The position numbers were made by a program, and so were the translations under genes. DNA of 64,000 bases, taken from assembly GCF_963921235.1 (NCBI RefSeq), contig NC_086110.1, positions 37,944,001-38,008,000 on the forward strand, written 5' to 3'. This DNA comes from Mobula hypostoma (Eukaryota). A model generated the notes under the pieces. It worked only from the letters and a program-made list of their open reading frames with translations, had not been told where the DNA came from and did not search any database. Below are positions 29,283 to 54,900 of the stretch, piece by piece (position 1 is the stretch's first letter; the number at the start of each line of letters is the position of its first letter).

Positions 29283-29929
29283 AGTGGCCCGGCTCCGGGA
29301 TACAGACCCCAGCCGGCGGCACCCCCGCTAACCGGGAAGTGAATTAGGTGAGCCGCTAAGGAGGCGGAGCCTAGAGTGCGCGGAGGGGGTGGGGCTTGGG
29401 GAGTGGAGGGGCGGGGCCTAATGATCATTTCCTCCGGTGGACAGCGCGCGCTCCTCTCTCCCGCCAGCGATTTAAAGGGATCGGCGCATGCGCACTGAAG
29501 CATATCTGCCGGGATTTTTTTTCCGCGGTAGCAGCCGGCGAAGGTGGAGGAGTCCCGGCCAGGGGGGGTCACTGGTATATAGTACGGACAGTGGCCGTCG
29601 GCAGCAGCATCGGTCACTGAGCTGGCTGTCGGATTGCCGCTTCGTCAGCTGCAGCTGGCCCCGTCTGTTCCCGGTACGTTAGTGAGGGGGGATGCGGTGG
29701 GAGAGGTGAGGGTGCCGGTAGCCATCTTCGGATGTGTGGCCAGAGCGGCCCCTTCTCCCGATATCAGTAGTGTGACTGGGCTGGGTGGTGGAGCCCATCC
29801 CCACCCCGCGCCTCCCATCTCCATTTCAAGCCCCTAAACTGCGGCCAAGTTAATGAGCAACATAACTCACTGTGGCCCTGTTCTCTCCCAATTACAGGAT
29901 AACTTTCACCCACACATCCCGCTCCGAAG
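29283..29929. promoter_or_regulatory. CpG-island bidirectional promoter shared by the BtpA-family gene and CCNE1, including the CCNE1 non-coding first exon
   Basis: CpG-rich island in an otherwise CpG-poor window. GC box GGGGCGGGGC 29408-29417; NRF1-type GCGCATGCGCA 29484-29494; E2F-like TCTCCCGCC (~29457) and TTTTCCGCGG (~29519); likely exon 1 donor CCG|GTACGT at ~29673; exon 2 acceptor TTACAG|G at 29898. Confidence 0.8.
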
Positions 29930-32900: not shown

Positions 32901-35900
32901 TTGAAGATGATTTTTGACAGGTGATTGAACTATTGAAGTTTAGTACCTAGATATTTGTTTGGTGGTGTTGTCTTACAGCCATTTGACTTCAGACATTGGA
33001 GTAACAAATTTGAGTAAGAGTTTATTCTGCTACTTGGCAAAATCATGACTGATCTTGGATCTTGATCCACACTAGCCTTTTCTCCATATTCATTTAACAT
33101 TTTTTAAAAGCAAAGCTCCTTTACCAAATAACAAAGTGGTTGTGCTTTAATGACAATACAACAGTTTGATGGTCCCCTTTTGTTGATATTAGTAGTTTAT
33201 TAAATTTGGAAGAAGTTAAGTTCTTCAGTTGCCATGGTGGAATCTGAACACTCGAGTGACTTTTTTTTCCAGAATTGCAATTCATCACAATTAATCAATC
33301 CAGTAATCAGGTGCATTTTGTCAGTGCAGTTTGAGAAGCTGTCAAAACTCTCTATTATTATCAGAATGGAAGCTTGTAAAATCACTTAACCATTTCAATC
33401 CCATGACAGGAACAGGTGTAGTATCCAGAATGATGTATGGGGGAAGGTGATATTAAAATTTGGGGAAGACGATCCAAGCAACATTGCTATGCTAGCTCTA
33501 GACTTTGCCATCATGAGCTAAGTACATGCTAAATCTTGGAAAGTGTTATGCATCTGTAAAATTCACTTTAATTGCAGGATTGCTGGAATATTAAAACCAA
33601 CTGTGCAAGTCCTTCCAGATTCACTTCATTGTCACACAAAAATTCAGATGGCATGATAACATCATATTCCACAAGTAATATACAGTGCAAGTTCAAAAAT
33701 GTCTTAGCCACCCCAACTAGAGCTTCACCATTACCTGTCTTCTGGTAAGTTTATTCACTTGTACCATAGATTTGTGTACCTTAAATTCTCATTCCAATGA
33801 GACTGGCAACTTGAATAATGGCCAGATAATGTATTTACACAATCTTATTTTTAAAAATGTTAACAGCTGGGCAAATAGAGATGAGGTATGGAATATTCTT
33901 CTGAAAAAAGAACAGATGTATTTGAGAGACAAAGATGTTTTACAAAAACATCCTCTCTTGCAACCGAAGATGAGGGCTATTCTTTTGGACTGGTTAATGG
34001 AGGTAAGGCACCACTTGGAGCATTAATTATTCTGGTTAGACTTAATTATTAAACCAATAAGTGATTTTTAAAAAATTCAAAATCTAAAACCATTGTTTAT
34101 TAATTCTGAGTACTGGCAAAGTTATCAATGAGTTGCTCCACTCCTTATTACAGCATTTGGTCATCAGGATTTTGAACCACAGGGAATGGGTCCAAGTCAA
34201 AGTGTTTGAATAATCTATGAAGTACAGTTGCAACATTAATTAAAGAACTAGTTCAATCTGCCAAACAAGATGCTGCAAGAGGCAAGAAATCTGGAAAAGG
34301 ATGAATACTGAGAAATGTGGAGAGTTAATGTTTTTGGTTGATAATCTAGTGATAACTGTATAAGTGTGCAGCAATTGTGCACTGCAGGAATGGTATTTAT
34401 GTTCTTTGCAATGATAATTGTACAAATATTACAAATAGGAATTTGTCATTGAAAAACTTGCTATCTATTAATTTTGAATTTTTAAACTATTGTAAAGGTT
34501 TGCGAAGCCTACAAGCTACACAGAGAAACATTTTATTTAGCCCAGGACTACTTTGATAGATTTATGGCAACACAGAACAACATTGTAAAGACACGATTGC
34601 AGCTTATTGGTATTTCATCTTTATTTATTGCTGCAAAGCTGGAGGTATGGTAACATTTACAAACAATCTAAGAATTGAGTATTTTTTCCATTTAGCAACA
34701 GGACACTTAATTCTCTAACATTTTGCAGGAAATATACCCACCAAAGTTGCATCAGTTTGCCTTTGTTACTGATGGGGCTTGCACAGAAGAAGAAATTCTC
34801 AATATGGAACTTGTTATTTTGAAGGTACTTTAATTTTAAGTATTTCCAATAATGGCTAATATACACGATGGCTATATTAAAATAAGCCATTTTTGCTCCA
34901 CCTTGAATGGAATAACATCTGAAACATATCACCATTGTTCTGAAATATTTGCAAATGCTATTAATTCAGCTCAATTCTATGTAGCAAATTATCCACTATT
35001 TTTAAATTATTCTAGGCTCTGAAATGGAGTTTGTGTCCTGTAACCATTGTGTCTTGGCTCAATATCTACATGCAAGTTGCTTATTTCAAAGAAAAGTACG
35101 AAGTACTGATTCCACAATACCCCCAGGAAATATTTGTTCAAGTAATGGAGGTAAACCCATTTTTAATCAATTATTTTAGCTGCTATTAACAAATCAGGAT
35201 GGTAATTATGCTTTTAAATGTCCCTCAGTTTGATATCTGTGCTTAATATATTACAGTGCAACTTCAACATTTTTGGGGTTATGATATGACAAGTTGAAGG
35301 AAATTGCTGTTTAACTGTCTGGCTCAAGCTCTGTTTTGAACACTGAACAGCTTTGCTCCAAATATACAAATGAAAACTGACCAATCTCCAATCCACTGCT
35401 ACCAACCTCCACCCCTCCATTGGTTTCTACCTCCTACCAAGATTTATATACCTAACTTCCCCATACGGGTATTGTTTCTGCCCGGTCCTACGCTACTGAA
35501 CTCATGTCCACATTGTTCGACTTAATTTTGCTTTCTGCACCCCCCCCCCCCCGCCGCAAGGTTTAGCTCCTGACAACCTACATCTGACTTCACATGTTCT
35601 CTCACTTCGATCACCCTCAGGTGACGCAACCCTTCACCTGTGAGTCAGTCGGGCTCATCTATTGCATCCAGTGCTCCTACAGCAGCCTGTACATCAGTGA
35701 GCTGAACACACTTTTGTTTGTCAAGCACCTTAGCTGTCTGCTGCAAAAGGCACAATCTCACAATGGCCACCCATTTCAATTTGACTTCCCATACTGATGT
35801 GTAAACATGGTCTCCTTTACTACCATGCCAACTTCAAACTTGGAATGGCAAGCAAAACCTCATTCCATCTGGGTAGCCTCCAACCTGACGGCAGGAACAT

Positions 35901-38900
35901 TAAATCCTTTAACCTATAATAATTTCTCCTCCCTCCCTCCCCTTTTTCCATTCCCTATTCTGTTTATCTCCTCACCAGTTCACTTCTCCTTGTCTTCCCA
36001 TAACCTCCCTCCTGTTTCTCCTCCCCATTTCCTTTCATAGTCTGCTATCCTCGATCAGATTCCTTCCTCAGCCCCCTAGCCCCTCCCAGCTTATTTCATT
36101 CTCGCTCCCCCACCCACCTTCCCCCTCAACCTGATTTTTACCCATCACAAACCCACTTGTCTTCCTTCCCCTACCCTTTCGTTATTCTGGCTCTTACCTT
36201 TTTTTCTGAAGTGTTTGGCACAAAACACCAACTATTTCCCTCCATAGATGCTGCCTGACTTGCTGAGTTGCTCCAGCATTATATGTTAGTGAAGGTTTCC
36301 AGTATCTGCAGAATCTCGTGTTAATGACAATACTATTCTCAATATACATTTAAAAATATAATCAGATGCTGGCTTTCTCCAGAATTGGAGAAACGGTTGG
36401 GGGGGGGGGTGGGGAGCATCATTCAAAGTTGTTCCTGATTACAGAAAATACTAAGTCAAATATGCATGTTGATTCTATGGACAAGAACAATTTGATTAAA
36501 CTCTTCAATATACTAGATGTATGGGAGTCAGGGTAGAAGGATGAATACAAAATAGTCAACCTCTACTGCTTTAAGTTTGTGTAATGGTAAAATGGTGGCA
36601 CACTTTTATTTACGATCACAAGACATTCAGAATGTAAATAGTGTGGGTCTACTCCATCAGTGAGTTGCTCCTTGTCAGAGGAACTTAAGGTGCGGATTGT
36701 GCTGCTGCCTGCATCAGAGGCATTGGAGAGGATGTGCAATCTAACTGCGGGTGATCATCCTAGTTGCTTTTCTTGTGATGCAAGACCCTGTTGGACACTT
36801 ATTAATGTGAAATGCTGCACATCAATTCACTGGTTTATTGGCAAATGGCTGGGGAGCTGTGGCCTCAGTCTTAGATACACTGTCACCTGTTTGCAGCTGG
36901 CCAAGACAGAGGCTTTGAAGTTGGTGCGCTCCACCAGCGGCAGTGTGACATACACGTTGGAGTCCATGCTGTCCTGTGCTCACTTAGCAGAGGGCAGGAT
37001 GTAGTTTGTCTGCACATTACAACATTCATGGACTCAGGGATTTGGACTGACTGTATTTTACAGCTGTCTTATGTGCTGTGTGTGACTCTGTTTTGTTTGA
37101 CTCTATTCATAGGTATTCATGTATGCTTGAACTTGATAACAGCCAAACTTTTTGCTCTCTCAATAGCTATTGGATCTCTGTATTTTGGATCTCAAATGTT
37201 TGGAGTTCACGTATGGAGTTGTAGCAGCTTCAGCTTTGTATTACTTTTCTTCCTGTGACCTAGTTCACAAAGCATCAGGTACAGTGACATTTCTGGTTGT
37301 GTACACGGTGGTCCGATGGTCCACATGTAAACTTAATTATTAACAACCATTTAATGCATAGGTTTTGAGTGGAGTGAAATAGAAGGATGTGTAAGATGGA
37401 TGATTCCATTCACCATGGCCTTGAGGGAAGCAGGAAACATAACAATGAAGAACTTGAAAGGTGTCTGTTCTGAGGATATGCACAACATACAGATACACTC
37501 CAACAATTTATCGTTATTGGTAAGTTTTATTTTGTATGCACAGGACCAGGCATTTTGACTTTGATCTGTACCATTAGTACACTGTGGTGGGGGGAGAAGG
37601 AATAGTGCATTCACAATTGCAAGAAAATTGTAAACCCTTTGCAATTACCTGGTTTTCTGCATTAATTACACTTAAAATGTGATCTGGCCTTCATCTAAGT
37701 CACAGTAAGACACACAATCTCATTCAAACTAATGAAACAAAACAATTGTACTTTCCATATCCTTACTGAACACTGTTTCATCATTCGGTCTGGGCTGGAA
37801 AAATTGTGAACCCTTGTATTTAAAACTGGTAGAACCTCCTTTAGCAGCAATAACCTCCACCAAACATTTCATGTAGCTTCTGCTCAGACTTGCACAATGG
37901 CAAGGAGAAAGTTCAGACCATTGCTCCATACAAAATTGTTTTGGTCATCAATATTTCTGGGATACCTTGCATGAACAGCCCTCTTCAGGTCAAGCCACAG
38001 CATTTCATTTGGGTTAAGGTCTGGACTCTGACTTGGCCATTTCAAAACGCACTTTCTTTTTAAACCATTGTTTAAACTGTCGTTGATTTACTCGTGTTTC
38101 AGATCATCTTCTTGTTGCATCATCCAACTTCAGGTGACAGACTACTACCCTGACATTCTCCTGAAATGTCTTGTTACAATTTTGAATTCATTTTTTTCCC
38201 CTCAATGACAGTAAGTTGTCCAGACCCTGAGGCAGCAAAGCAGTCCCAAACAATGATGCTCCTTCCACCATGCTTCACAGTCAGGATGAGATTTTGGTGT
38301 TAGTGTGCGGTGCCCTTTTCCCTCCAAACATGGTGGTGTGCATTTCAGCCAAAAAGTTCAACTTTTATCTTATCTGCCCATAAAATATTGTCCCAGAAGC
38401 ATTGTAGAACATCTAGGTAGTCTTTTGCAAACATGAGATGTGCAGCAATTTATTTTTGGAGAGCAGTGGTTTCCTCCATGGTGTCCTTCCATGAACACCA
38501 TTCTTGTTCAGTGTTTTTCTTGTAGTGAACACATGAATGAGGTTAACATAGTGCACTCTTAACATAGTGGTGTGCACTACTGCCAAAAAGTTTCAAGTTT
38601 GTAAAAGTTTAACAAGCAGCAATATTTGTTCGTTGTTTTTTTTGAGAACAATCGTTTCCTCCATGGTGTCATTCCATATCATTCTTGTTCAGTGTTTCTC
38701 TTACAGTGGACACATGAACAGAGACTGTAGCAACTTCTAGAGATTTCTACAGGCCCTTTGCTGTTACCCTTGGGTTCTTTTTCACCTCCATCAACATTGC
38801 ACGTTGTGCTCTTGATGTGATCTTTGCAGGATGCCCACTCCTAGGGAGAGAAGCAACAGGACTGAATTTTCTCCATTTGTAGACAATTTATCTTTAGTGT

Positions 38901-39973
38901 AGACAGAACACTCTGGTCTTAGAAATGCCTTTGGAGCCTGTTCCAGCTTCATGCATCTCTTCAGTTCTAAGGTCCTCCTGAAGGTTGTTTTGAATGAGGC
39001 TTGGTGCACATAAATGGATCTCTTGAGAAGAGCAGGCTCTGTCAGTAATCTGACTTTCGTCAATAGGGCAGCAGACCGCTACAACCCACACCTCAAATCT
39101 CATCTCATTGACTGGAACACACAGATCACTTTTGTAGAAGGCATTATCCCAGAGGTTCACATACTTCTTTGAACTTAAGCAATTGTACCTTGCCAATACT
39201 GAGTACACCATTTAAGCAATCAGTCTGAGTGTTAGTTTAGACATATTGTTTGTCAATTATTGTGACTTGGATGAAGATCAGACCACTGAGTGAGTAATGC
39301 AGAAAACAGGTCATTGCAAAGGGTTCACAAAGTTTTTCTTGGAACTCTATTTGCTTGTCCTGTAATTTTCAATTAACTAGATCTTTAATTCTGTTCTGAA
39401 CAAATGTGTAATTCAAATGTTGAGATAAGTGTTGGGTAATTCCTGTCTAGGTTTTGTTCTGAAGTGAGCCAAGAATAAAAGCCAGTCAGTAACTAAAATG
39501 GTAGCCTGGAAGAACTTTTCAGTGAGCTTGGCCGAAATGATACATGTACTCATGGATGTTTAAACCACCATTACGTTGAAGAGAAGATGTGTGATAGATC
39601 TGAATATCACAAATTTACCTGTAAATTTTGGATCCTACTATTTGCTAATGAGTTGTTTGTTGCTTGCATTACAATACTGACTACATTGAGTATTTCTAAA
39701 GTATTATCAAAAGCAGGGAGTTGTTGAACACCTGACATGTACCCATTTCGGCAGGCCATCAAATGCAATAAATTTAGATCTTTAAAGTAAACTTTCCTTC
39801 AGGCAACACTGTTTTTGTTGCATTTTTATCATTTTTTTTGTTGCCTTTTTTTTAAGGATAAAGCTCACTCTAAACAAGCACTGCTATTGGAACAAAGCTC
39901 ACCTCTACCTTCTGGAATTTTAACTCCACCACAAAGCAGCAAGAAACAAAACAACTGGTGTGAGTCCTTGTGA
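29930..39973 (+). CDS. CCNE1: G1/S-specific cyclin E1, 11 coding exons, 408 aa
   Basis: join 29930-29943, 30055-30139, 30224-30283, 33578-33744, 33867-34002, 34498-34644, 34729-34824, 35016-35150, 37167-37278, 37362-37519, 39857-39973 = 1227 nt, all GT-AG. Contains the [18 protein letters not shown], cyclin box [47 protein letters not shown] and C-terminal [15 protein letters not shown]. Adjacency to URI1 supports E1 rather than E2. Confidence 0.96.
35440..36320 (+). mobile_element. Degenerate Penelope-like element in a CCNE1 intron
   Basis: [14 protein letters not shown] peptide, CTGGGTAGCCTCCAACCTGA, terminal TAGATGCTGCCTGACTTGCTGAG. Confidence 0.75.
37614..39347 (-). mobile_element. Degenerate Tc1-like transposon filling the last CCNE1 intron
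   Basis: Inverted ends GCAAGAAAATTGTAAACCCTTTGCAATTACCTG and CAGGTCATTGCAAAGGGTTCACAAAGTTTTTCTTG; internal CCACCATGCTTCACAG (VKHGG) and other Tc1 landmarks. Confidence 0.8.
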
Positions 39974-40350
39974 AATCAAATTGCAACTATGGTTTAGTGG
40001 GTGAATTTTTCCTTGCTGGAAATCTGAATACAGCTTGATGCAGAGAAGATGGGACTTGATTTGTGTAATATTGAATGCTGACGACAGCCAGGAATTTTAC
40101 TTGCATTCTTCTGATGGCATTGTCACTTAATTCTGGATGTTAAAAGTATCTACTTGTTTTTAATACACATTTTTATACCTGTTATAGCCAAAAACTCCAA
40201 CCAAATAAGGAGTACTTTGAGTAATCCTGAATGCTGCTAAGGAGGGTGGCTCTCTAAAATAAACAGTGAGGTCATAGATTGATTTATGAAATGTTTATGA
40301 ACTTTAAGCTGCTATGTTTATTTTAAATAAAGGTACATCTACATTATTTG
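39974..40350 (+). promoter_or_regulatory. CCNE1 3'UTR with miR-15/16 seed sites and two AATAAA signals
   Basis: TGCTGCTA 40232-40239, GCTGCTA 40308-40314, AATAAA 40258-40263 and 40326-40331. Confidence 0.65.
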
Positions 40351-42229
40351 CCCTGTCCCATGTGTAATGTTAAAAAAGGTGACTAGCTATGCAGAAGATG
40401 GAACAAGCAGGAAGCAGTAGCTCTTGATGATCTTCATGCAACAGAGGGATAGCAAATGCTGAAATTCGGATGCTGAAGTCTTTTCCTTAAATCCAGATGG
40501 CATGTGGTCATATACAGGTTTCTAAGAGTAACTGTGTAGGACAGTATAAAATTATGGAAGTTTGTTAGAAAGGTGTGGTATTAATCAGTGGATAGTTTCA
40601 ATCTCAAGATTAAAAATGAGCAAAGGTATCTGGATGGTGTTTGATTCTTGATATTTTATTAGAACAGCATATGTCACAGCTAATTAAAGGAAATACTAAG
40701 ACCTGTAAGATTAAATAGCCTCATTTGAATGTTGTCTTTGAGGGAGAAGAATAGGTTTAAGATTAGTATTTTAGACTTGAGGGCAATTGTAAGAGTGTGA
40801 AAATGGAGCTAAAGGGAGATGCAGCATGCAAGGGGATTCTTTAAATGCTGGATGGAAAGGAGGGGCTAAACGGAATAACCAGCAAAAACTGCATGAAAGA
40901 CTTTTTGACTATATTTATCTTGTACTCCAGTTTTTTGGAGTTGGAGCCAGGAAAGCTATGATTAGAAAAAGTTGGCAGAATGAATTGAGCATTTTGCTTT
41001 GGTTTTCAAAGATAAGATGTGGGATGCGGAAGGACTGAAAATTACAATCATCTTACCAAAGTATTGAAACTGGGGGCCTGGTGAGTCACTGCTGAGGCCC
41101 TTCATCCCTGGGGACTTAAGTGAATAGTGAGACAGTTGATGCATCAGTTTTAAAACTCTAGATGTAAGGAAGGTTCTATTACATTATAAAATCACTCATG
41201 CTTTATTTGCATAAAGCACTTCTGAGGGAAGGAGAAACTAGAGGTGTAGTCCATACTGGATATGGAGGAAACACAATCTATGTGCTCCTGTATTTTTAAA
41301 ACAATGTTCAACTAAGTGGCATTTTTTGGTGGGGGAAGAGAGGGTATCTTTAAGGAAGTTGGCTCAAAGGCAGTGTAGGTGCAGCTACTGGCTATTCTTA
41401 AGGCAGAAGCCTACAAAATCCAGGGACTGAATGGTGGTATTAGTTGCAAAACCCAACTCGGGTTCCTGATTTGTATGCTTCAGAATCAGACTTGATTATC
41501 ACTGACATAGGTTGTGAAATTTGCTATTCTTTCAGCTACCTAAACCTCTAACTCAGTCACCACCAAAAATTCCTTTCTTAGAAACATTGTTCATCTCTCC
41601 TTTCCTCAATTCCTTTAATGTATTAATCTTTAATTTTCAACCACCTTCAAATCACTTTACATGCCTGTTTTGCTTTCTCAAACACTAATCTTCCTTGCTG
41701 ATTTAAATCAATGTTTATCCTCGGGTTCTAATTCTAATAGCTTTGATAGTTTTTACAAAATATTACCCAAATCTTAATTGAATTATACCCACCTATTTAT
41801 TAACACTAGCCTAATCACAGGATAATTGGTCATTGTAAATTGTCCTAACTGGACTGGAGGAGAAAACTAAAACGGCTAAAGGAAACTGGCGTGGTCACAG
41901 GGAGAATATATATAAACTCCTTCAAAATGGTTTTGGAACTGAGCTGCGCTGTACCATGGTGTCCCTGACCAAAGTTAATACACCTAATCTGATCATCATA
42001 GTCACTACCTCTCATTGAATTGTCTTCAGTTTTAAATTGACCACAGCATTCTCCAACACCCTCTATGATCTGCTTATTCAATTTCAGTTGGATTTCAGGA
42101 TCACTAGGTTCTGGCACCCTGGTCCAAGGATTTTGTTAAAATTAGAACTAGAGCATAGTCGTTTTTGAATAGTTTCAATTTTGCAGAGTTCCTACCAGAT
42201 GGACTTGACAGCACACTAGGTCCAAACGC

Positions 42230-42795
42230 AAAAATGCTCAAGACATTTCAATTAGACACTAGTTAAATGTAGACATACACAAATTCACACATTGATGCAT
42301 TTTGAACAAATAAACTCATTGATTTTCCCATGCTTTAGCTTTCCCTCAGTCTCTAAATGCACTTTTAGAGCCTGACGCACACCTCTCCCAAAATGTAACT
42401 CACACGTCGCAGCAACACAGACCGCAACAGCTGTGATTGGTCTGCTTGGTAGCATCGCATTTCCTCCTGCGCTGCAATAGCTTCCTATTGGCCAACTGAA
42501 GGGCAGGGAAGGAACTCTGGCTGCAATGCTTTCCATAAAGCTTTACAGACCTCCGAAATTATGGAGGGCACATTTCACTTTTATGAATAAAGATACTCGC
42601 TTTAAACTTGTTTACCCTGAGAAAGAGTACCATGACCATGAAGCCTTGCGTGGGCAGGTGTGTGCACATGCGTGACGCGCCCGAATTGCAGAGCAATGCA
42701 GACACACCAATGCACACGTATAAATGCTCACAACGCACGCAAGCCATTTGCGTAGGCTACGGTGTCCATTTGACGCACAAGTATAAATCAGCCTT
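42230..42795. mobile_element. Possible Harbinger-type non-autonomous DNA transposon fragment
   Basis: Right end TGACGCACAAGTATAAATCAGCCTT resembles fish Harbinger-N termini; CpG-retaining body; left end not found. Confidence 0.4.
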
Positions 42796-43789
42796 TAGTC
42801 CTAATGCAGATCAGGGTACTGAATTTCAGACAAGTACCTGTAACATCAGGCACACTACTTTGTGTAACACCAATGAATGAAATAGTTGATAATTGGAGTA
42901 ATACTCTACACAGAGAGAGATGATTTGAGATGGTTAGAGTCAATCATTCCAGCCTTAGGACAGCACTGCACGATTTGTTCATGAGCTTCCATCCATTTTA
43001 GTCACTCATGATTGCATTATATTCTATTCTCAAAATATACCAGCATATGAAGGAAGACCTAAATAATATCCAGACACAGACTGATAAGTGGCAAGTAACA
43101 TGTCTCCTATCAAAGTGCTAAATGTTAATGATCTTCAACTGTGTGAACATTTACTAATTTTTACATCAATATCATCATTCATCTGCCCAATCATCAACAT
43201 TCTGTGATTCACCACTGAGCAGGAACTCAACTATCTCAGGCCAAATAAATACTATTCCTACAAATGTAAAGCAGGCTTCACTTCTGCAGTAAGTGACTTA
43301 TTTTCAATAAGGAATTTAGAAAACTTAGCAGTTTTGTAAGCTCTCTGAGATATTGCATGTGTCTAGGCAGGTTATGGACATAATGTACTTCACTTTTTTT
43401 TGGAAAAGAAATGATCGATGCTTCAAATTCTAGATTAAAAAAAGAACATTTCCTTGACATTGACATCAATGCCCATTTCTCTATCATAACAACATTATTC
43501 AAATTCTGAAAGTTGACTTCCCCGACACCCTTTTTCCCACAACAAACCCTAAAATACACATTTTGTTTGGCATTATGGATTTTTATTATGTTAATATATA
43601 CAGTAATAGGTGCTGACTGTGTTAATTTGTCTGCATTGAGCCTTACCTGCAAGCAGTCTACTTGCAGCAACCAGGTCTAGAAGGCTGGGGAAAAAGTGAG
43701 TGAAGGGATAGTTTAGTTCAAAAATTTGAGATAGTGAAACAAATCTGTCTTTTCATTCTAACCATTTTATGCTTGAACCAATTCCACGA

Positions 43790-44030
43790 TACAAGAGAAA
43801 ACATTGTGGCCAGTGAGTCCATGCTGATCATAGTGCTCACCCAGGTAGCTACAATTTCCCACATTCAGTCCCACCCCACCATGTACCTATCCAAATGCTT
43901 CTTGCATGTTACTATAGTACCTGCCTCAACCACTTCTTTTGGCAGCTCATTCCACATAATCACCACCCTCTGTGAAATAGTTGCCCTTCAGGTGCCTTTT
44001 AAATCCATGCCCTCCAGTTTTGAACTCTCT
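43790..44030 (-). mobile_element. CR1 3' fragment
   Basis: CATGTACCTATCCAAATGC...GGCAGCTCATTCC...CACCACCCTCTGTG motif. Confidence 0.7.
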
Positions 44031-45344
44031 TGGGGGGGGAATGCTGCTACCATTCACCTGCAGTCATCTTGAAATTAATTGTAGCAATCACAGTGGGGCA
44101 CATTTTGTGAATTTACAGTGGGCTTGACAGCCAAACAACTGTCATTTATACAGTTTGAGATTGATAATGCAGAGATTAATATTAAAATTCTGATATGCTA
44201 TTGTAATTGAGTCATAAAAAATGTTAGCAGGGCTTTTTTGCCATATTAAAGAACAAATAAAGAAATATTACACTGGACAACTTCTCCCTGAGAAAAGCCA
44301 GCATGGATTAATGCAGGAACTTGCCTGAGGAACTAAAATTAATAATGATAGCAACAACAGGCATATTGTTATGCAACAAATGTTATTTATATGGACATCA
44401 ATAAAGTTCAGCATATCTGAAGCAAAACTTGGGGAATTTAAAGCAATTTATAACTCTGATCAGGAAACTTTCTGAGACAGGAGAAAAAGGAATAATAAGT
44501 AGATAGGTAATCGATTCAGCAAGTTCCGTTCTGCATTAGGAATAAATATTCGGTTATTCAACCATATTTCTCGACAACTTAGATCTTATAATAGCCTCAC
44601 AACGCTCTAGCCCGAAACGTCAGCGAGATTAACGAGCTGGTTGTTGACCTAACGAAACGGGGCGGGGCGGGGCGTCTGTCTCCTCTTTAATGGAAATGCT
44701 ATCCTTAAGTTCTTGGTAACTATACAACCAGCAACCTCATCCGGTCCCTCTTTTTATTCTACAATCATTTTCCCTTCAGAATCATACAAATAAAACTGCA
44801 TGCATACAAATTTGTATAGGGCATCACAGCCTTTTGAACAAGGACGTCAAGTTCTTTCCTTGATTGGGAGTGATATAGGTATTAACAATTTAAATAAAAA
44901 TATCTATTACTTTTCCCGTGTTGTGTCTTTATGCTTCTTACAGAAGTGGGTATGCCCCCCCCACCCTACAGTCTAGTTTTTACTCCCCTTGCAAGGGAAA
45001 AAAACAAGACATTGATCGAAGATCACGGGCAGAAAAATCCGACAAAGCTGCTGCAAAGAATAAATTAGAACATTTAACGCAAATTATTCCTCGGCGAACG
45101 CGACAGGAGACGGGCAACAGGATGGCGGAGCTGTCCGAGCTCGTTGACAATAAACTGCTTGCAGCAGCAACTGGACCTGTGCAGCAATGCGGGACTACAA
45201 ATGCCGGAATCTGGAATAACACGCAAAGCACTGGAGTAACTCAGCATCTATGGAATGAAGTGGACACTCCAGATGATGAATCTTGAGATGTCGACTACTT
45301 CCATCCATAGATGCTGCGAGTTCCTCCAACGCTTTTGTGTGCTG

Positions 45345-45793
45345 CCCCTTAAAACATAAGCCCCACTACAGAGGTCCCGCCCCCTTCCAACCGATGCCAC
45401 CTCCAAGGCTGATCCATCGTCTCGCACTCCAAACCTTAGCCTCAATTCTAAAGGCTTTTACCTTGGCGTGCTCTTTGTGCTGTGAGCAAGACAGCTTGTG
45501 GGCAGGCGGTGCTGCGAGTCCGCCATTTCCTTTAGGCCAGGCCTAGCAGCCGATGCACAAACACTCACCGACTGGGAGTCCTAAAGACATGTCTGTGTAT
45601 GGGAAAACTGTGGCCGCGGAAATCCTCACATACATAGAGAGAGCAGACGTTTTCATCCGCACATTAACACATTTCACACTTGCATTATGATCCCACCGGC
45701 TCCAGCCCAGCTCTGACAAGGAATCCCTGGGTCTCAGCAACGCCCGCAACTCTGCGCCATGTTCCTCGCCCGGTGAATGCCGGGAGCACACGC
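45345..45793 (-). pseudogene. Inverted partial duplicate of URI1 promoter/5' leader/exon 1/intron start (frameshifted)
   Basis: The reverse complement aligns to 51682-~52168, with a 40-nt identical block GCGTGTGCTCCCGGCATTCACCGGGCGAGGAACATGGCGC. ATGGCGGACTCGCAG is retained at 45526 and the donor AGAGCACGCCAAG|GTAAA at 45462. The ATG-to-donor distance is 65 nt versus 81 nt, so it is out of frame. Confidence 0.9.
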
Positions 45794-45814
45794 GCAATCC
45801 GTTTCCCCGCTGTT

Positions 45815-48800
45815 CCATCCACCTCCCTCCTCTCCGCTGCTCCGTCCACCTCCCGCCTCTCCGCTGCTCCGTCCACCTCCCGCCTCTCCGCTGCTCCGTC
45901 CACCTCCCGCCTCTCCGCTGCTCCGTCCACCTCCCGCCTCTCCGCACTCCTCTCCATCCACCTCCCTCATTTCCATCCACCTTCCGCCTCCCTGCACTCC
46001 TCCATCCACCTTCCGCCTCTCTGCACACCTCCATCAACCTCCTTCCTGTCTGCACTCCTCCATCCACTTCCCGCCTCCCTGCACTCCTCCATCCACCTCC
46101 CTCCTCTCTGCACTCCTCCATCCACCTCCTTCCTGTCTGCACTCCTCCATCCACTTCCCGCCTCCCTGCACTCCTCCATCCACCTCCCTCCTCTCCATCC
46201 ACCTCCCTCATTTCCATCCACCTCCCTCCTCTCTGCACTCCTCCATCCACCTCCTTCCTGTCTGCACTCCTCCATCCACTTCCCGCCTCCCTGCACTCCT
46301 CCATCCACCTCCCTCCTCTCCATCCACCTCCCTCATTTCCATCCACCTCCCTCCTCTCTGCACTCCTCCATCCACCTCCTTCCTGTCTGCACTCCTCCAT
46401 CCACTTCCCGCCTCCCTGCACTCCTCCATCCACCTCCCTCCTCTCCATCCACCTCCCTCATTTCCATCCACCTCCCGCCTCTCCGCACTCCTCTCCATCC
46501 ACCTCCCTCCTCTCCGCACTCCTCCATCCACCTCCTTCCTGACTGCACTCCTCCATCCACTTCCCGCCTCCCTGCACTCCTCCATCCACCTCCCTCCTCT
46601 CCATCCACCTCCCTCATTTCCATCCACCTCCCGCCTCTCCGCACTCCTCTCCATCCACCTCCCTCCTCTCCGCACTCCTCTCCATCCACCTCCCTCCTCT
46701 CCGCACTCCTCTCCATCCACCTCCCTCCTCTCTGCACTCCTCCATCCACCTCCCGCCTCTCTGAACTCCTCTCCATCCACCTCCTGCCTCACTGCACTCC
46801 TCCATCTACCTCCCTCCTCTCTGCACTCCTCCATCCACCTCCCTCCTCTCTGCACTCCTCCATCCACCTCCCTCCTCCCTGCACTCCTCTCCATCCACCT
46901 CCCTCCTCTCTGCACTCCTCTCCATCCACCTCCCACCTCTCTGCACTCCTCCATCCACCTCCCTCCTCTCTGCACTCCTCTCTATCCACCTCCCTCCTCT
47001 CTGAACTCCTCTCCATCCACCTCCCGCCTCTGCACTCCTCCCTCCACCTCCCTCCTCTCCATCCATCTCCCATCTCTCTGCACTCCTCCATCCACTTCCC
47101 TCCTCTCCACACTCCTCTCCATCCACCTCCCGCCTCTCTGCACTCCTCCATCCACTCTCTGCACTCCTCCATCCACTCTCTGCACTCCTCTCCATCCACC
47201 TCCCTCCTCTCCGCACTCCTCCATCCACCTCCCTCCTCCCTGCACTCCTCTCCATCCACCTCCCTCCTCTCTGCACTCCTGCATCCACTTCCCTCCTCTC
47301 TGCACTCCTCCATCCACCTCCCTCCTCCCTGCACTCCTCCATCCACCTCCCTCCTCCCTGCACTCCTCTCCTTCCACCTCCCGCCTCCCTGCACTCCTCC
47401 ATCACCTCCCTCCTCTCCGCACTCCTCCATCCACCTCCCGCCTCTCTGCACTCCTCCATCCACCTCCCGCCTCTCTGCACTCCTCCATCCACCTCCCTCC
47501 TCTCCGCACTCCTCCATCCACCTCCCTCCTCTCTGCACTCCTCCATCCACCTCCCTCCTCTCTGCACTCCTCCATCCACCTCCCGCCTCTCTGCACTCCT
47601 CCATCCACCTCCCTCCTCTCCGCACTCCTCCATCCACCTCCCGCCTCTCTGCACTCCTCCATCCACCTCCCGCCTCCCTGCACTCCTCCATCACCTCCCT
47701 CCTCTCCGCACTCCTCCATCCACCTCCCGCCTCTCTGCACTCCTCCATCCACCTCCCGCCTCTCTGCACTCCTCCATCCACCTCCCTCCTCTCTGCACTC
47801 CTCCATCCACCTCCCTCCTCTCCGCACTCCTCTCCATCCACTTCCCTCCTCTCTGCACTCCTCCATCCACCTCCCTCCTCTCCGCACTCCTCCATCCACC
47901 TCCCGCCTCTCTGCACTCCTCCATCCACCTCCCGCCTCTCTGCACTCCTCCATCCACCTCCCTCCTCTCCGCACTCCTCCATCCACCTCCTCTCTGCACT
48001 CCTCCATCCACCTCCCTCCTCTCTGCACTCCTCCATCAACCTCCCGCCTCTCTGCACTCCTCCATCCACCTCCCTCCTCTCCGCACTCCTCCATCCACCT
48101 CCCGCCTCTCTGCACTCCTCCATCCACCTCCCGCCTCCCTGCACTCCTCCATCACCTCCCTCCTCTCCGCACTCCTCCATCCACCTCCCGCCTCTCTGCA
48201 CTCCTCCATCCACCTCCCTCCTCTCTGCACTCCTCCATCCACCTCCCTCCTCTCTGCACTCCTCTCCATCCACTTCCCTCCTCTCTGCACTCCTCCATCA
48301 CCTCCCTCCTCTCCGCACTCCTCCATCCACCTCCCTCTTCTCTGCACTCCTCCATCAACCTCCCGCCTCTCTGCACTCCTCCATCCACCTCCCTCCTCTC
48401 CATCCACCTCCCGCCTCTCTGCACTCCTCCATCCACCTCCCTCCTCTCCGCACTCCTCCATCCACCTCCCGCCTCTCTGCACTCCTCTCTATCCACCTCC
48501 CGCCTCTCTGCACTCCTCCATCCACCTCCCGCCTCTCTGCACTCCTCCATCACCTCCCTCCTCTCCGCACTCCTCCATCCACCTCCCGCCTCTCCGCACT
48601 CCTCCATCCACCTCCCGCCTCTCCGCACTCCTCCATCCACCTCCCTCCTCTCCATCCACCTCCCGCCTCTCTGCACTCCTCCATCCACCTCCCTCCTCTC
48701 CGCACTCCTCCATCCACCTCCCGCCTCTCTGCACTCCTCTCTATCCACCTCCCGCCTCTCTGCACTCCTCCATCCACCTCCCGCCTCTCTGCACTCCTCC

Positions 48801-49850
48801 ATCACCTCCCTCCTCTCCGCACTCCTCCATCCACCTCCCGCCTCTCCGCACTCCTCCATCCACCTCCCGCCTCTCCGCACTCCTCCATCCACCTCCCGCC
48901 TCTCTGCACTCCTCCATCCACCTCCCGCCTCTCTGCACTCCTCCATCCACCTCCCGCCTCTCTGCACTCCTCCCTCCTCCCTGCACTCCTCTCCTTCCAC
49001 CTCCCGCCTCCCTGCACTCCTCCATCACCTCCCTCCTCTCCGCACTCCTCCATCCACCTCCCTCCTCTCCGCACTCCTCCATCCACCTCCCGCCTCTCCG
49101 CACTCCTCCATCCGCTTCCCTCCTCTCTGCACTCCTCTCTATCCACCTCCCTCCTCTCTGCGCTCCGCCATCCACCTCCCGCCTCTCTGCACTCCTCCAT
49201 CCACTCTCTGCACTCCTCTCCATCCACTTCCCTCCTCTCTGCACTCCTCCATCCACCTCCCTCCTCTCCATCCACCTCCCTTCTCTCTGCACCTCCTCTC
49301 CATCCACCTCCCTCCTCTCTGCACTCCTCTCCATCCACCTCCCTCCTCTCTGCACTCCTCCATCCACCTCCCTCCTCTCCACACTCCTACATCCACCTCC
49401 CGCCTCTCCGCACTCCTCCATCCACCTCCCTCCTCTCTGCACTCCTCTCCATCCACCTCCCGCCTCTCTGCACTCCTCCATCCACCTCCCTCCTCTCTGC
49501 ACTCCTCTCCATCCACCTCCCGCCTCTCTGCACTCCTCCATCCACCTCCCTCCTCTCTGCACTCCTCTCTATCCACCTCCCGCCTCTCTGCACTCCTCTC
49601 TATCCACCTCCCTCCTCTCTGCACTCCTCTCCATCCACCTCCCGCCTCCCTGCACTCCTCTCCATCCACCTCCTTCCTCCCTGCACTCCACCTCCCTCCT
49701 CTCTGCACTCCTCCATCCACCTCCCTCCTCCCTGCACTCCTCTCCATCCACCTCCTTCCTCCCTGCACTCCACCTCCCTCCTCTCTGCACTCCTCCATCC
49801 ACCTCCCTCCTCCCTGCACTCCTCTCCATCCACCTCCCTTCTCTCTGCAC
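45815..49850. repeat. ~4-kb minisatellite, ~29-bp unit CCATCCACCTCCC(T/G)CCTCTC(T/C)GCACTCCT
   Basis: Direct tandem repetition of roughly 140 units with 19/27/28/31-bp variants; 125-bp higher-order period at 46209/46334/46459; extreme C/T versus G/A strand skew. Confidence 0.98.
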
Positions 49851-51293
49851 TAGCCTGCGCTGCTCCCTCCACCTCCTGCTGCTCCCAACTACCTGCCTCA
49901 TTCACCTTGTGCAGCCCCGTTGACTTCTGGGGCTCCCCAGTGTCGTGGCAGCTTCATTGACTCCTGTTGCTCCCTAATTACCCAGCTCTCCATTAATATT
50001 CTGCTGCTTCTCCTTTTTTCCTCTCTCTCGAGGCACTGCCCAGTGCACCTTGTTGCCTGTCTCCATGTGTGACGTGGTGCTCCCTAACTCTTGCTTCTTA
50101 CTAGATGCAACACCCCGTGCCATGAACTGCTCTATGTGTCTAACCACCTGAGGAGATTTCTGTAGTGGGTGTCGCTGCTTCCTCAGTACCCCGTGCTACC
50201 TCTCTCCCTGTTCGTGTGCAATGTGCACCAATGACCATAAATGGCACCTCTACCAGTGCTCTATGCTGCTCTGTAATACTTTGTGTGTTGCCTCACTGAA
50301 TTTTGTCACTGCCCATTTCCTTGTTCTGCCTCTCCCCCATCGTCCAGAACTTTGTGCTATGCAGTACCTTGCCTGCTCTCTGGGATTATACACTACCAAT
50401 TTCTCTGTGTTACTGTGCAGAACCATTCTGCCCAGGGAACCCTGTATTGCTGTCTTGTACCACGTACTCTCTATCCCCAATATTATGCATCATCTCTCCC
50501 CCTATGCCCTGTACTGGCCCTATCTCTGTGCCAGGAGCTTCCCACTTCCCCATGCTGTTTTTTGATTTCAGGACACAATCTCCTTCCCACAGCTTATGCT
50601 GCTTCCTCCCCGGTACTGGGAAGCAAATAAAACTGTGGATGCTGGAACCTGAAACAAAACCATAATTCTGAAAAAAAACCTTCACCCTCAGAATTTGTGG
50701 AAAGAGAAACCAGATGTTTCAGGTTGAAGGTCCTTCAGCAGAACTGAGAGAGATAACGCTGATCTAAGTAGCAGAGAAGCAGGGAAAAGGAAATAGGTGG
50801 AATAAAATGAATATCACACCTTTTTGCTCAGCATCATGTATCACCCTGTTTGCTCAGCACTACATTTATATGTTCATTAACTCCATTAATTGTGCTCCTG
50901 TTCCTCTGGCCGGCAGTCACTCCATATCAGCACTAGGTACTCCTTTGCCGATACGGTACAGCTCTTTGTCCAGTTATATGTGTTTCTCTCTCCCAGGCCT
51001 TGAGCTCTCCCTCCCATGTCCCACAGGTTGCTGCTCCGAGCACACCCTTCTCCAGCAACAGCTGCTGCCACCCCGAGTGCTGCCCCAGTAGGACCTGCTG
51101 ACACTTTCCACTCGCCCAGGGATCACATGCTACTACTCCGTGCTGCCCCAGTACTGTACCATCAGTTACCACAAGCTATTACTCTCTCCTTCAGTACCAC
51201 ATGCTGCTGTACAGTATTGTCTCCTGCCACTCTTGAAAGCTCCCCCAGCATCAGGTGCTACCATTCTCAGCTTTCTCCCCTACCACCTGGTGC

Positions 51294-51629
51294 CCCAGTA
51301 CCAGTTACTGCTGCTCTGAACCAGCCCCAGTACTAGTTAGTGCCACTTGGCCTGACCAGTACTGGTTACTGCCACTCTCAGCCAGCCCCAGTAAGTGCCA
51401 CTCACAATCTGTCCTAGTACTAGTTAGTACCACTCTCGGCCTGACCAGTACTAGTTAGTGCCACTTACAGCCTACCCCAGTACTAGTTAGTGGCACTCTC
51501 GGCCTGACCAGTACTAGTTAGTGCCACTCTCGGCCTGACCAGTACTAGTTAGTGCCACTCACAGCCTACCCCAGTACTAGTTAGTGCCACTCTCGGCCTG
51601 ACCAGTACTAGTTAGTGCCACTCGGCCTG
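51294..51629. repeat. ~31-bp tandem array CCAGTACTAGTTAGTGCCACTCTCGGCCTGA (~11 units)
   Basis: Units at ~51327, 51356, 51414, 51445, 51477, 51508, 51539, 51571, 51602, with two tail variants (TCTCGGCCTGA and T(C/T)ACAGCCTACC). Confidence 0.92.
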
Positions 51630-51963
51630 CCCCTCCCCCGGCCACGTGCTGCCCACTTCCCCTCCCGCCGCTTGTTTTGGTGCGTGTGCTCCCGGCATTC
51701 ACCGGGCGAGGAACATGGCGCGGAGCTGGAGGTGCTGCTGAGTCCCAGGGATTCCTCGTCAGAGCTGGGCTGGAGCCTGTGGGATAATAATGCGAGTGTG
51801 AAATGTTTTCTGCTGCTAGTTTGTGGATGAAAACGCCTGCTCTCTCTATGTGTGCGAGAAGTGAGGAGCTCCGCGGCCACAGTTTTCACATACATAAACA
51901 TTTTTTTAGGACTCCCTGTTGTTGAGTGTCTGTGCATCAGCCGCTCGGCCCGGCCTGAAGGAG
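51630..51963 (+). promoter_or_regulatory. URI1 CpG-island promoter / 5' leader
   Basis: CpG-rich; E-box CACGTG ~51643-51648; YY1/Kozak-like AACATGGCG at ~51712 and GAGATGGCGG at the start codon. Confidence 0.7.
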
Positions 51964-54900
51964 ATGGCGGACTCGCAGCCCTGTTCCGCCGTCAAGCTGC
52001 CCCCCTCGCAGCCACTTTCACGACTCAGAGAAGAGCACGCCAAGGTAAAGGCCTTTAAATAGAGCCTAAGGCAGCAGGTTTGGAGAGCAAGGCGACGGAG
52101 CAGTTGGAGTGGCGGCCTCGGTCAGAAGGGGGCGGGGGCCCTGGAGCCTGGCTTGTGTTTAAAGGGGCCGCCTGCATAAATCCCAGGTTTTGCTGCAGAC
52201 GGTGAATTGGCACCTCTGGCTACGGTACTTTTATTTGTACCTGTTTAGCCTTTTTTATGGTTGGTTAGAAATGTCGATCGATGTCGCTTGACATTTTATT
52301 AAAGCTTACGCTTCTCTCTCCCTCTAAACGACACAGAAATTTAATAGATCCCAGTTGAAACTGTAACTAGAAGGTACCAACTCAATCGACACATTCTATT
52401 TTACTTTCAGTTTATTTCCTTTTATTTTGTTTCATCGGCCGAGATTACGAGGAACGTGACCACTTTCAATCATTAAACTGCCGATGAGCATGGAAAACTA
52501 ATTGAAAGAATCATATTAGCGTTTAACTGTGTACGTGGATAGTTTTAATGACGTTTGAGCGTTTTAGTTGTTGTATATTTTAGGGATTTTTCGTTTCTTT
52601 AACTTTTTTTTCCTGTCCACTTTACTTTGCAAATATTTTGTTTGTTTAAAACCACTGCTCGGCATTTTATTGAGGGGCTCCAGTACTTTAGTGATACTCG
52701 TAACGAACCTTGCTGGCAGCCAGATAGAACAGCGCCTTCTGCAGGGCTACGGCGACCTACGACTCCAAGCGGTAAAATTTAACCGTGTATTCTCTTAACC
52801 AACCAGAATAAAGCATCACGGCATCGGAACCAGGAAATATCAAGTTCATGTAGTTAGTTCAAGGCGGAGTCGGGAATAGAGGGGGAAGGATATATAGGCC
52901 TGGTTTTGCTTTCAGTGATAAAGAGCAAGCACCGAAACAAAAGTGTCCAACAAGATCGGTGACTTCTTTTACCGGTATGGATCTCAGCAAGTGGTCTCAC
53001 CAGTAAATTATATTGAAGCAAAGACAAACAAATGTAGATGCTAAAGATTTGGATTAAAATAGGGAATGCTGGCATTTCAGGTGAAGAGAACCATATAACA
53101 CCTCAATCCTATTAGTGGTGCCTTGATTTAAAATATTTTTAAAGAACTTCTGCAGGGGAATAACCCTGATAAAGATGAAATTTGCAACAGCTAGAAATTT
53201 TTAAAAACATCCCATTTGTGGAGATTTTAACATCACCCTGTTATTAATGACAGCTTCTGACTACTCATTCTTGTAGAAAACATGTTTTTGTTTCACAGAA
53301 GTTCAACAGAACCAATGTAATAATTTTGGTTATCCTAGACACTAATGTTATAGGTGTTTCTGTGCTGCCTATGCAGCAGAGCTTGGTCTGTCATCATCTT
53401 GTTCCCAGTAAAATTAGGATAGGTACCTAACGTGCATAGCCATCCCACGTTAAAAGAAATAATGCACAAGTATCTTCAGGTCCTCAGTAAGCCATCCCTA
53501 ACTGTAAGGGATTGCGTTTATCAAAGAAGCTGACAGTTCCATATGTAATGATGAATGCTGATAATTTCATTATAATTGCAATACAAATTTCAGGTCCTTT
53601 GTGATAAGTGGGAAGTCAATACAAAAGAAATGGAAGATTGGAACTGCCACCAATCTTTAAAGTAGTTAATACAAGTGAAACTTAGTTTTACTTTGGCACT
53701 GAAAACTATCTCATAGAAACATTGAAAATTTATAATGCAAGATTATTCAGTCTGTCGTGTCAGTACCGGTTGAACAAGAATACTTCAGCCTAAATCCAAG
53801 TCATAGCTCTTCAATCATAGATCAAATACTTCAAGGGGTTTGTGCACCTAACATTTTTTCAGATGGCCAGTTCCAGAATCCCGCCACATGCTGAATGGGA
53901 AAAAGTCTTTCTTTGTCACCCCTTTAAACGTTAAACCTTTATCCTTTTTGATGGCCCCTCTAGTAAAGGAAGTATATTTTTCTTATTTGTTCCCTTCTGG
54001 GCCTGTCATAATTTTATTCATCTCATTTAAATAATCTCTGTTCCAAAGAAATTTTCCCATATTTTTCATAGCTATGTTTTCCAGTCTGACATTTCCTGCA
54101 TTCCCTCCCTATTCTTGTCATGGAATGACCAGGACTGTATTCAGCTGTGGCTGAACTAGTGTTGTGTTGAATTCTGCCATAACCACCCAGCTGCTTTATG
54201 ATGCAATTGGCTGATAAAAGATAGCATCACAATAGCTTTCCAAATACATTATCTCACAGTTTTCTGGATTAAATGTACCATTTCACTGTCCAACTTTCTG
54301 AACCATCTCTACTTGGAGTTTAAAGCCAATTTTTGTATTCTTACAAAAATTTTAAATTATAGTCCAAGTCATTGATATACTTCATTAAAAATAAATTATT
54401 CTGTACTGACTCCTGTGGAGGTCTGCGGTATCAGTCAATGAGCCATAGAAACAATTATTAATCATTGTGTGGCATATATCCATCCACGTGGAGGTCCGCT
54501 GGTGATAAATGCCCAGCTACAGGAACACCCATCAGTAAGTAACTGCCACTGGATCAATGTTGGATCCAATATGCCACTCTCCTTTAGATCCCATAGATTT
54601 TTCCAGTTTGACCAACCTGCCATGTGGAAACTTGGTACAAGCCTTGGCAAAAATCCATGTAATTAACCATGATTAAACTTTGACTTTTTAAATAATGGTT
54701 TATACAGAGAAAGTTGAAACAAATTGGTCTGTAATAACTGTGTTTAATCTACTTCCTTTATAGATGTGTATGTTAGCAGACCTCAGTCCCTTGACACTGT
54801 TTGGTAGGCAAAAAGGACTAAAGGATTGTCAGCTTCTGCAATTTCCAGCTTTGTTTTAACATCCTGGGATATTTTCAACTAGGCCTGTTGATTTGCCCAT

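Follow-up and report, generated by a model that had tools for sequence, protein, structure and literature searches.

The locus

The window analyzed here is a stretch of 64,000 nucleotides (nt) from the genome of Mobula hypostoma (assembly GCF_963921235.1, contig NC_086110.1, positions 37,944,001 to 38,008,000 of the forward strand), and all positions below are counted from its first letter. On the plus strand lies CCNE1, spanning approximately 29500-40742. Its exons are found at about 30 to 40 kb, and one of them matches human cyclin E1 chains with E = 2e-24. On the minus strand is a gene of the BtpA/SgcQ family (PF03437; 11072-29282), an identity that was confirmed exon by exon. It runs from 29282, head to head with CCNE1, and the two share a CpG island at 29000-30000 (GC 0.61, CpG observed/expected ratio (o/e) 0.76). 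Downstream of CCNE1 and in the same orientation is the start of a gene that is presumed to be URI1. The subject of this report is a short inverted copy of that start, placed between it and CCNE1, which we call arm A or copy A; the parental sequence is arm B. Copy A is transcribed, and probably provides a distal promoter and first exon for the BtpA-family gene on the far side of CCNE1.

The distance between copy A and CCNE1 is well defined. A contig of 2339 nt from an RNA-like sequencing run (X6) covers the 3' end of CCNE1 and stops at 40742, 4.7 kb from the splice donor of copy A. A first-pass annotation of this DNA, made from the sequence alone, had placed the CCNE1 3' end about 5 kb away, in good agreement.

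An inverted duplication of the presumed URI1 start

Repeat search, gapped local alignment and blastn against the window identified two inverted copies arranged head to head and 5.9 kb apart. Arm A comprises 45341-45793 on the minus strand (453 nt) and arm B 51682-52171 on the plus strand (490 nt). Blastn aligns them with E = 8e-110. Of 494 alignment columns 384 are identical, corresponding to 78% with gaps and 86% without gap columns. Neither blastn nor repeat search found a third copy of the arm within the window. No similarity was found within the window past either arm end, the spacer ends and the downstream flanks being unrelated. The first-pass annotation had proposed this paralogy with almost the same limits (45345-45793 and 51682 to about 52168), and its main observations on the arms were confirmed. 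Each arm opens with an identical block of 40 nt (45754-45793 and 51682-51721), as it had claimed; a permutation test of this run gives p = 0.002-0.09, depending on the treatment of gaps. The first 128 nt contain 11 mismatches and 4 gap columns (91% identity without gaps), where it had counted about 12 mismatches in about 127 nt. The ATG context, the AAG/GTAAA donor and an intronic GGGCGG box, all listed there as surviving, are common to both arms. So are 14 CpGs, of 22 in arm A and 28 in arm B.

Two further claims stood only in part. A graded similarity along the arms is weakly supported, in that the first 128 nt differ from the remainder with p = 0.037, but the comparison of exon with intron gives p = 0.13. 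The view that non-coding sequence is better kept than coding sequence holds for insertions and deletions, the coding part having 18 gap columns out of 82 and the leader 15 out of 284. It does not hold for substitutions; identity without gaps is 87% in the leader and 86% in the coding part, with 81% at the intron start. It is therefore indels, not substitutions, that distinguish the coding part of the arms. The coding part of exon 1 is 65 nt in A and 81 nt in B, so that A is 16 nt shorter and frameshifted, just as had been described, and both peptides read as that annotation wrote them.

Arm A repeats, in inverted orientation, the start region and exon 1 of the presumed URI1 and the first ~120 nt of its intron 1. 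Arm B contains the corresponding leader, which carries five upstream ATGs, the coding part of exon 1 (ATG at 51966, donor after 52046) and the start of intron 1. The share of arm-B sequence words present in RNA-like runs is 0.57-0.69, which fits an exon spanning about 51690-52046. We infer that this is exon 1 of URI1 because it follows closely on CCNE1 and is read in the same direction, and because its peptide ends in ...RLREEHAK. This resembles the end of human URI1 exon 1, with its RLREE..K motif. The copying was from B to A, as A retains, out of frame, the nucleotides that encode ...EEHAK in B.

Copy A is real, and it is old. It is not an assembly fold-back because the arms diverge by 14-22%, and because a DNA contig from a second species joins arm A to its flank. 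That contig (1876 nt) spans 43925-45784, including arm A and unique flanking sequence, with 32 differing letters (~98% identity). The first-pass annotation was therefore right to discount an artefact. The share of copy-A words is 0.80-0.88 in four RNA-like runs, each of another sample of this species, 0.51-0.53 in DNA runs of the second species and 0.31 in a third species. The intron part of the arms differs by ~19% while the two species differ by ~1.7%, and the duplication must therefore long predate that species split. In the public runs, copy-B words reach the organisms that we labeled E to H, and copy-A words are seen only in those labeled A, B and C.

Transcription and splicing from copy A

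Contigs from public runs were aligned over 39900-45830, with the CCNE1 3' end included as an internal control. Runs X5, X6 and X13 are RNA-like, X13 being from the second species, and X9 is DNA. X5 and X6 are empty at 40890-41483 and 42870-43463, and are read as RNA because of these uncovered gaps, unlike X9, which covers 42774-45784.

A splice joint connects 45462 to 43684, skipping 1777 nt. The skipped segment has the ends CT..AC on the plus strand, i.e. GT..AG on the minus strand, and the RNA is assigned to the minus strand because of this polarity. The joint is present in X5, X6 and X13, thus in three samples and two species, and is absent from the DNA run X9. Its two sides share no 31-mer able to mislead an assembler. 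In X5 the word depth, a crude measure, is 128 for the spliced contig and 7 for a contig crossing the donor unspliced. An active promoter with minus-strand splicing from a donor at 45462 had been predicted from the sequence; these joints bear out the prediction, and support the transcriptional activity of copy A.

The new first exon (A1) occupies 45462-45778 on the minus strand, and is at least 317 nt in length. Its contigs run from 45778 to 45462 in X5 and from 45766 to 45462 in X6. It contains the URI1-derived ATG at 45526-45524, with eight ATGs upstream. The donor GT at 45460-45461 (minus strand, AAG/GTAAAA) is inherited from URI1 exon 1, and is the one used in X5, X6 and X13. X13 has a second joint, from 45569 to 43684. 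This donor, whose GT is at 45567-45568 (minus strand, TCG/GTGAGT), precedes the ATG and exists in copy A alone, the corresponding sequence in B being TTGAGT; its use was seen only in the second species. Both joints lead to a new internal exon of 38 nt (A2; 43647-43684, minus strand) that is unique in the window. It has a pyrimidine tract and AG acceptor, and a CAG/GTAAGG donor.

Exon A2 and the preceding BtpA exon both end with CTTGCAG before the donor. We considered whether A2 is a copy of that exon and rejected this, the alignment not being significant. A short polyadenylated isoform of two exons, using an AATAAA after A2, was likewise rejected, since the junction contig accounts for all of the depth in those bins. 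In X5, X6 and X13 there are also contigs of low depth at 44047-45491, which extend over much of the A1-A2 intron and across the donor without splicing. Possible sources are pre-mRNA, intron retention, DNA carry-over and transcription of the plus strand.

The transcript is connected to the BtpA-family gene

Past position 43647 the contigs of X5 and X13 carry the same 26 letters, which do not lie within 39900-45830. These letters have a single match in the window, 26 out of 26, at 24627-24652, where 0 are expected by chance. Read on the minus strand, an AG acceptor directly precedes 24652, and this base is precisely where an exon of the BtpA-family gene begins (24502-24652, minus strand). This exon matches PF03437 at positions about 100-152, with E = 2.7e-11. 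Because the 26 letters match only at this exon edge, we conclude that the RNA splices into the middle of the BtpA-family gene. The junction contig ends 26 nt into the exon, which is expected of an assembly graph with k = 31 where two isoforms merge.

The intron between A2 and the BtpA exon is 18,994 nt in length. Within it lie the first BtpA exons, the shared CpG island and the whole of CCNE1 in antisense orientation. With CCNE1 situated between the two ends of the joint, the primary transcript has to run across that gene, and it also has to read through the shared CCNE1/BtpA island. No antisense exon over CCNE1 was seen in 39900-40742, the part of the gene that the strandless contigs cover.

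The reading frame is consistent with this connection. Starting from the ATG at 45526, the 65 nt of A1 and the 38 nt of A2 leave one base, which joins the AT that opens the BtpA exon, and the phase fits. The ATG is in the BtpA frame because the coding part of A1 is 65 nt and not the parental 81 nt, which would not fit. The open reading frame (ORF) has no stop in the later exons of the gene (15359-15232 and 11262-11072) until the stop codon of the gene itself, at 11072, giving a chimeric ORF of 190 amino acids. The predicted product would have 35 new residues followed by the C-terminal ~155 residues of the BtpA fold, with predicted junction peptides STPSLLDLVAASR and LLADADFIR. Of the parental protein just MADSQ would be present, the rest of the URI1 exon-1 peptide having been lost by the net deletion of 16 nt and the change of frame.

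A literature search returned no report of this locus or of vertebrate BtpA biology.

Sequence features around the two starts

The 40-nt block at 45754-45793 (minus strand) is the likely core promoter and start site of copy A. It contains an initiator-like (Inr-like) GGCATT and, 17 nt beyond this, a YY1-like ACATGGCG. The X5 contig ends at 45778, the A of GGCATT, contig ends being weak evidence of a start. A second YY1-like core lies on the main ATG. These motifs are present in both arms, as is the intronic GGGCGG box. Upstream of the arms the sequences differ; B has a CACGTG box and GC-rich motifs, and A has a minisatellite.

An upstream ORF of eight codons opens on the YY1-like motif. It reads MAQSCGRC followed by a stop codon in A (45760-45734, minus strand) and MARSWRCC followed by a stop codon in B (51715-51741, plus strand), and is open and of equal length in both arms.

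CpG o/e is 0.66 in arm A (GC 0.55) and 0.68 in arm B, compared with 0.30 in the window. Copy A is surrounded by a CpG-rich island at 44600-46200 (o/e 0.7-1.0), wider than the duplicated arm and with CpG-poor DNA on both sides. Copy A qualifies as a CpG island by the thresholds of GC > 0.5 and o/e > 0.6 over at least 200 bp. A promoter that has long been unmethylated would be expected to show such a pattern.

A minisatellite with a repeat of 27/29 nt (45794-49851) adjoins the A start on its upstream side. It extends for ~4 kb, and fills most of the spacer, which also holds ~1.8 kb of CpG-poor DNA. On the plus strand it is 85% C+T, with 52 CCCGCC and 139 CCTCCC sequences, a GC skew of about -0.85 and CpG o/e of 0.8. 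It could act as an array of GC boxes or adopt an unusual DNA structure, and it may have favored the inverted duplication. A second tandem array, with about 10 copies of 31 nt (51292-51623), lies in a CpG-poor stretch directly upstream of the presumed URI1 start, and is followed by the CACGTG at 51645-51650.

At the distal end, arm A abuts a palindromic element (45225-45335, with arms 45242-45261 and 45297-45316). A motif beginning GGAGGAACTC lies just beside this element, at about 45290-45325. It is found again near 24.4 kb, and the peptide WRNSAGQ represents it in open frames near 16.2 and 62.5 kb. The motif is thus probably a dispersed repeat that marks or hides the boundary of the duplication.

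A probable captured promoter, and other explanations

These observations can be assembled into a pathway. The presumed URI1 gave rise to an inverted duplicate about 5.9 kb upstream, a piece of ~450 bp that extends from the start site through exon 1 and ~120 nt into intron 1. Copy A kept the core promoter block, the ATG context and the splice donor. Minus-strand RNA would start near 45.78 kb, the exact position being deduced from the motifs and contig ends, and is spliced from 45462 to the 38-nt exon at 43684-43647, and thence over the 18,994-nt intron to 24652. The indels that leave 65 instead of 81 nt bring the URI1-derived ATG into the BtpA frame, leading to the predicted 190 amino acids. 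Continuity to the last BtpA exons is likewise a prediction. We consider that a duplicated and active start, serving as an alternative first exon of the BtpA-family gene, is the best explanation of the data as a whole, with a probability of about 0.75.

A number of points weigh against this reading. The library types of all the runs are unrecorded, so that 'RNA' is a guess by software, and X13 was flagged as 'probably DNA'. The contigs carry no strand and have no true 5' ends. The link to the BtpA-family gene consists of 26 letters in each contig, and the contigs stop short of the downstream exons and the poly(A) site. Concerning the name of the parental gene, no candidate for URI1 exon 2 was found among open frames and motifs on the plus strand of 52.2-64 kb, and the 27-amino-acid exon-1 peptide of arm B has no PDB match at E up to 10. 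The in-frame open reading is suggestive, and by our own estimate would arise by luck with a chance of ~1 in 10. Further points bear on the protein. The upstream ATGs of A1 argue against efficient translation. The predicted product would begin at about position 100 of 254 in the BtpA profile, and without ~40% of the TIM barrel it may not fold. The isoform using the donor at 45569 in the second species lacks the ATG of the ORF. Taking these together, we think it doubtful that a protein isoform is made and is useful. Otherwise the RNA would be a regulatory or neutral by-product of a captured promoter.

The strongest form of the captured-promoter reading is that the URI1 start has been domesticated. 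In this case selection would have kept the promoter, ATG and donor, and favored the loss of 16 nt. A half-barrel isoform of 190 amino acids would be made. Polymerase would pass head-on through CCNE1 and the CCNE1/BtpA promoter, coupling URI1-like regulation to the output of cyclin E1. We regard this full version as distinctly unlikely.

The best-surviving alternative keeps the same transcript and gives it no coding role, and we would put it a little short of an even chance. The RNA might be neutral noise, or might act through its transcription, by head-on interference with CCNE1 or with the shared CCNE1/BtpA promoter. The upstream ATGs, the truncated profile match, the loss of the ATG in the second species and a primary transcript that must traverse the whole of CCNE1 in antisense are all as this explanation would have it. 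Yet the frame is open for 190 amino acids into that of BtpA, and the leader of the parental URI1, presumably a translated gene, also carries upstream ATGs. Moreover the joint is kept in two species, and the depth of its contig, by what is a crude measure, is not low when set beside that of the CCNE1 3' end in the same runs.

The first-pass annotation had proposed a different product of copy A, a stand-alone spliced long non-coding RNA or micropeptide directed toward the CCNE1 3' end. Such a gene would end between copy A and CCNE1, for which an AATAAA might be used that follows the A2 donor by about 65 nt on the minus strand, and to which the low-depth unspliced contigs over 44047-45491 could belong. 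In both species, however, the A1-A2 contig goes straight on into the exon at 24652. X5 and X6 also lack coverage at 42870-43463, and the depth around A2 is accounted for by the junction contig alone. The proposal was not borne out, and we now consider it improbable.

That copy A is an inert relic or an artefact (a decaying pseudo-promoter, an assembly error, or joints created by the graph) can hardly be correct; the coding part is indeed full of indels and the arms flank a 4-kb minisatellite that is difficult to assemble, but the divergence of the arms excludes a fold-back, the second-species DNA contig links arm A to unique flank, and the same GT..AG joints, with no shared 31-mer, are found in three runs from three samples and two species, exactly at the inherited donor.

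Other features of the region

Related open frames (FTCESVG...IGET/KT...RLGD...EHLRSV) occur in introns of the BtpA-family gene and CCNE1, at 18198-18593 and 23578-23913 (minus strand) and 35588-35794 (plus strand). One of them matches GIY-YIG weakly (E = 0.004, short of the Pfam cut-off), and the frames may be what is left of a Penelope-like retroelement. Between the CCNE1 3' end and exon A2, two segments (41682-41879 and 42276-42869) have contig depths in the thousands in every run, DNA and RNA-like; these are high-copy repeats. No Rfam family was found at gathering thresholds over 43-53 kb, and a plus-strand frame of 130 amino acids at 44894-45283 matches no Pfam family.

Comparison with known systems

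Copy A is a new case of a known event, the capture of a promoter and first exon by partial duplication. It is a clean and datable example of a gene gaining a promoter and start codon, in which every step can be read from the sequence, from the short inverted copy of a neighbor's start to the single recruited exon of 38 nt and the indels that happen to restore the frame. It also points to an unannounced isoform of a vertebrate BtpA-family gene. In addition, cyclin E1, a key gene of the cell cycle, is wholly enclosed by an antisense intron, and the enclosing unit is driven by a copied promoter of the gene next to cyclin E1, so that transcriptional interference could be tested in a cartilaginous fish.

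Chimeric genes formed by partial gene duplication are well known, for example Drosophila jingwei and human CHRFAM7A. As in those cases, a duplicated 5' piece supplies a promoter, 5' untranslated region and start codon to the exons of another gene, generating a fused transcript. One distinction is that here just five parental residues remain, so that a promoter and a start codon have been captured and no domain has been shuffled. Furthermore, the recipient gene is on the opposite strand and two genes distant, the splice into it passes over the whole intervening gene, and it is not itself duplicated.

A further analogy is with transposon-derived alternative promoters. These create chimeric first exons, as in transcripts initiated in long terminal repeats (LTRs) or long interspersed nuclear elements (LINEs) (for example PMC12587700, PMC12129452). 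Like LTR and LINE promoters, copy A is an inserted, distant promoter sequence that splices into an exon of a host gene to create an alternative 5' end. Unlike them, its source is the housekeeping-type CpG-island core promoter of a neighboring gene and not a mobile element.

The two starts also resemble bidirectional CpG-island promoter pairs, such as that of CCNE1 and the BtpA-family gene at 29-30 kb, in being divergent, CpG-rich and TATA-less. Unlike such pairs, they are paralogous and separated by 5.9 kb. Because the minisatellite and the CpG-poor DNA lie between them, they probably form two islands and not one shared promoter.

Lastly, the unit resembles nested genes and natural antisense units, in that CCNE1 lies wholly inside its intron on the opposite strand. 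It differs from natural antisense units in that, over the part covered, none of the exons observed for the new RNA overlaps a CCNE1 exon. Any effect on CCNE1 would thus be likely to come from transcription itself and not from RNA duplexes.

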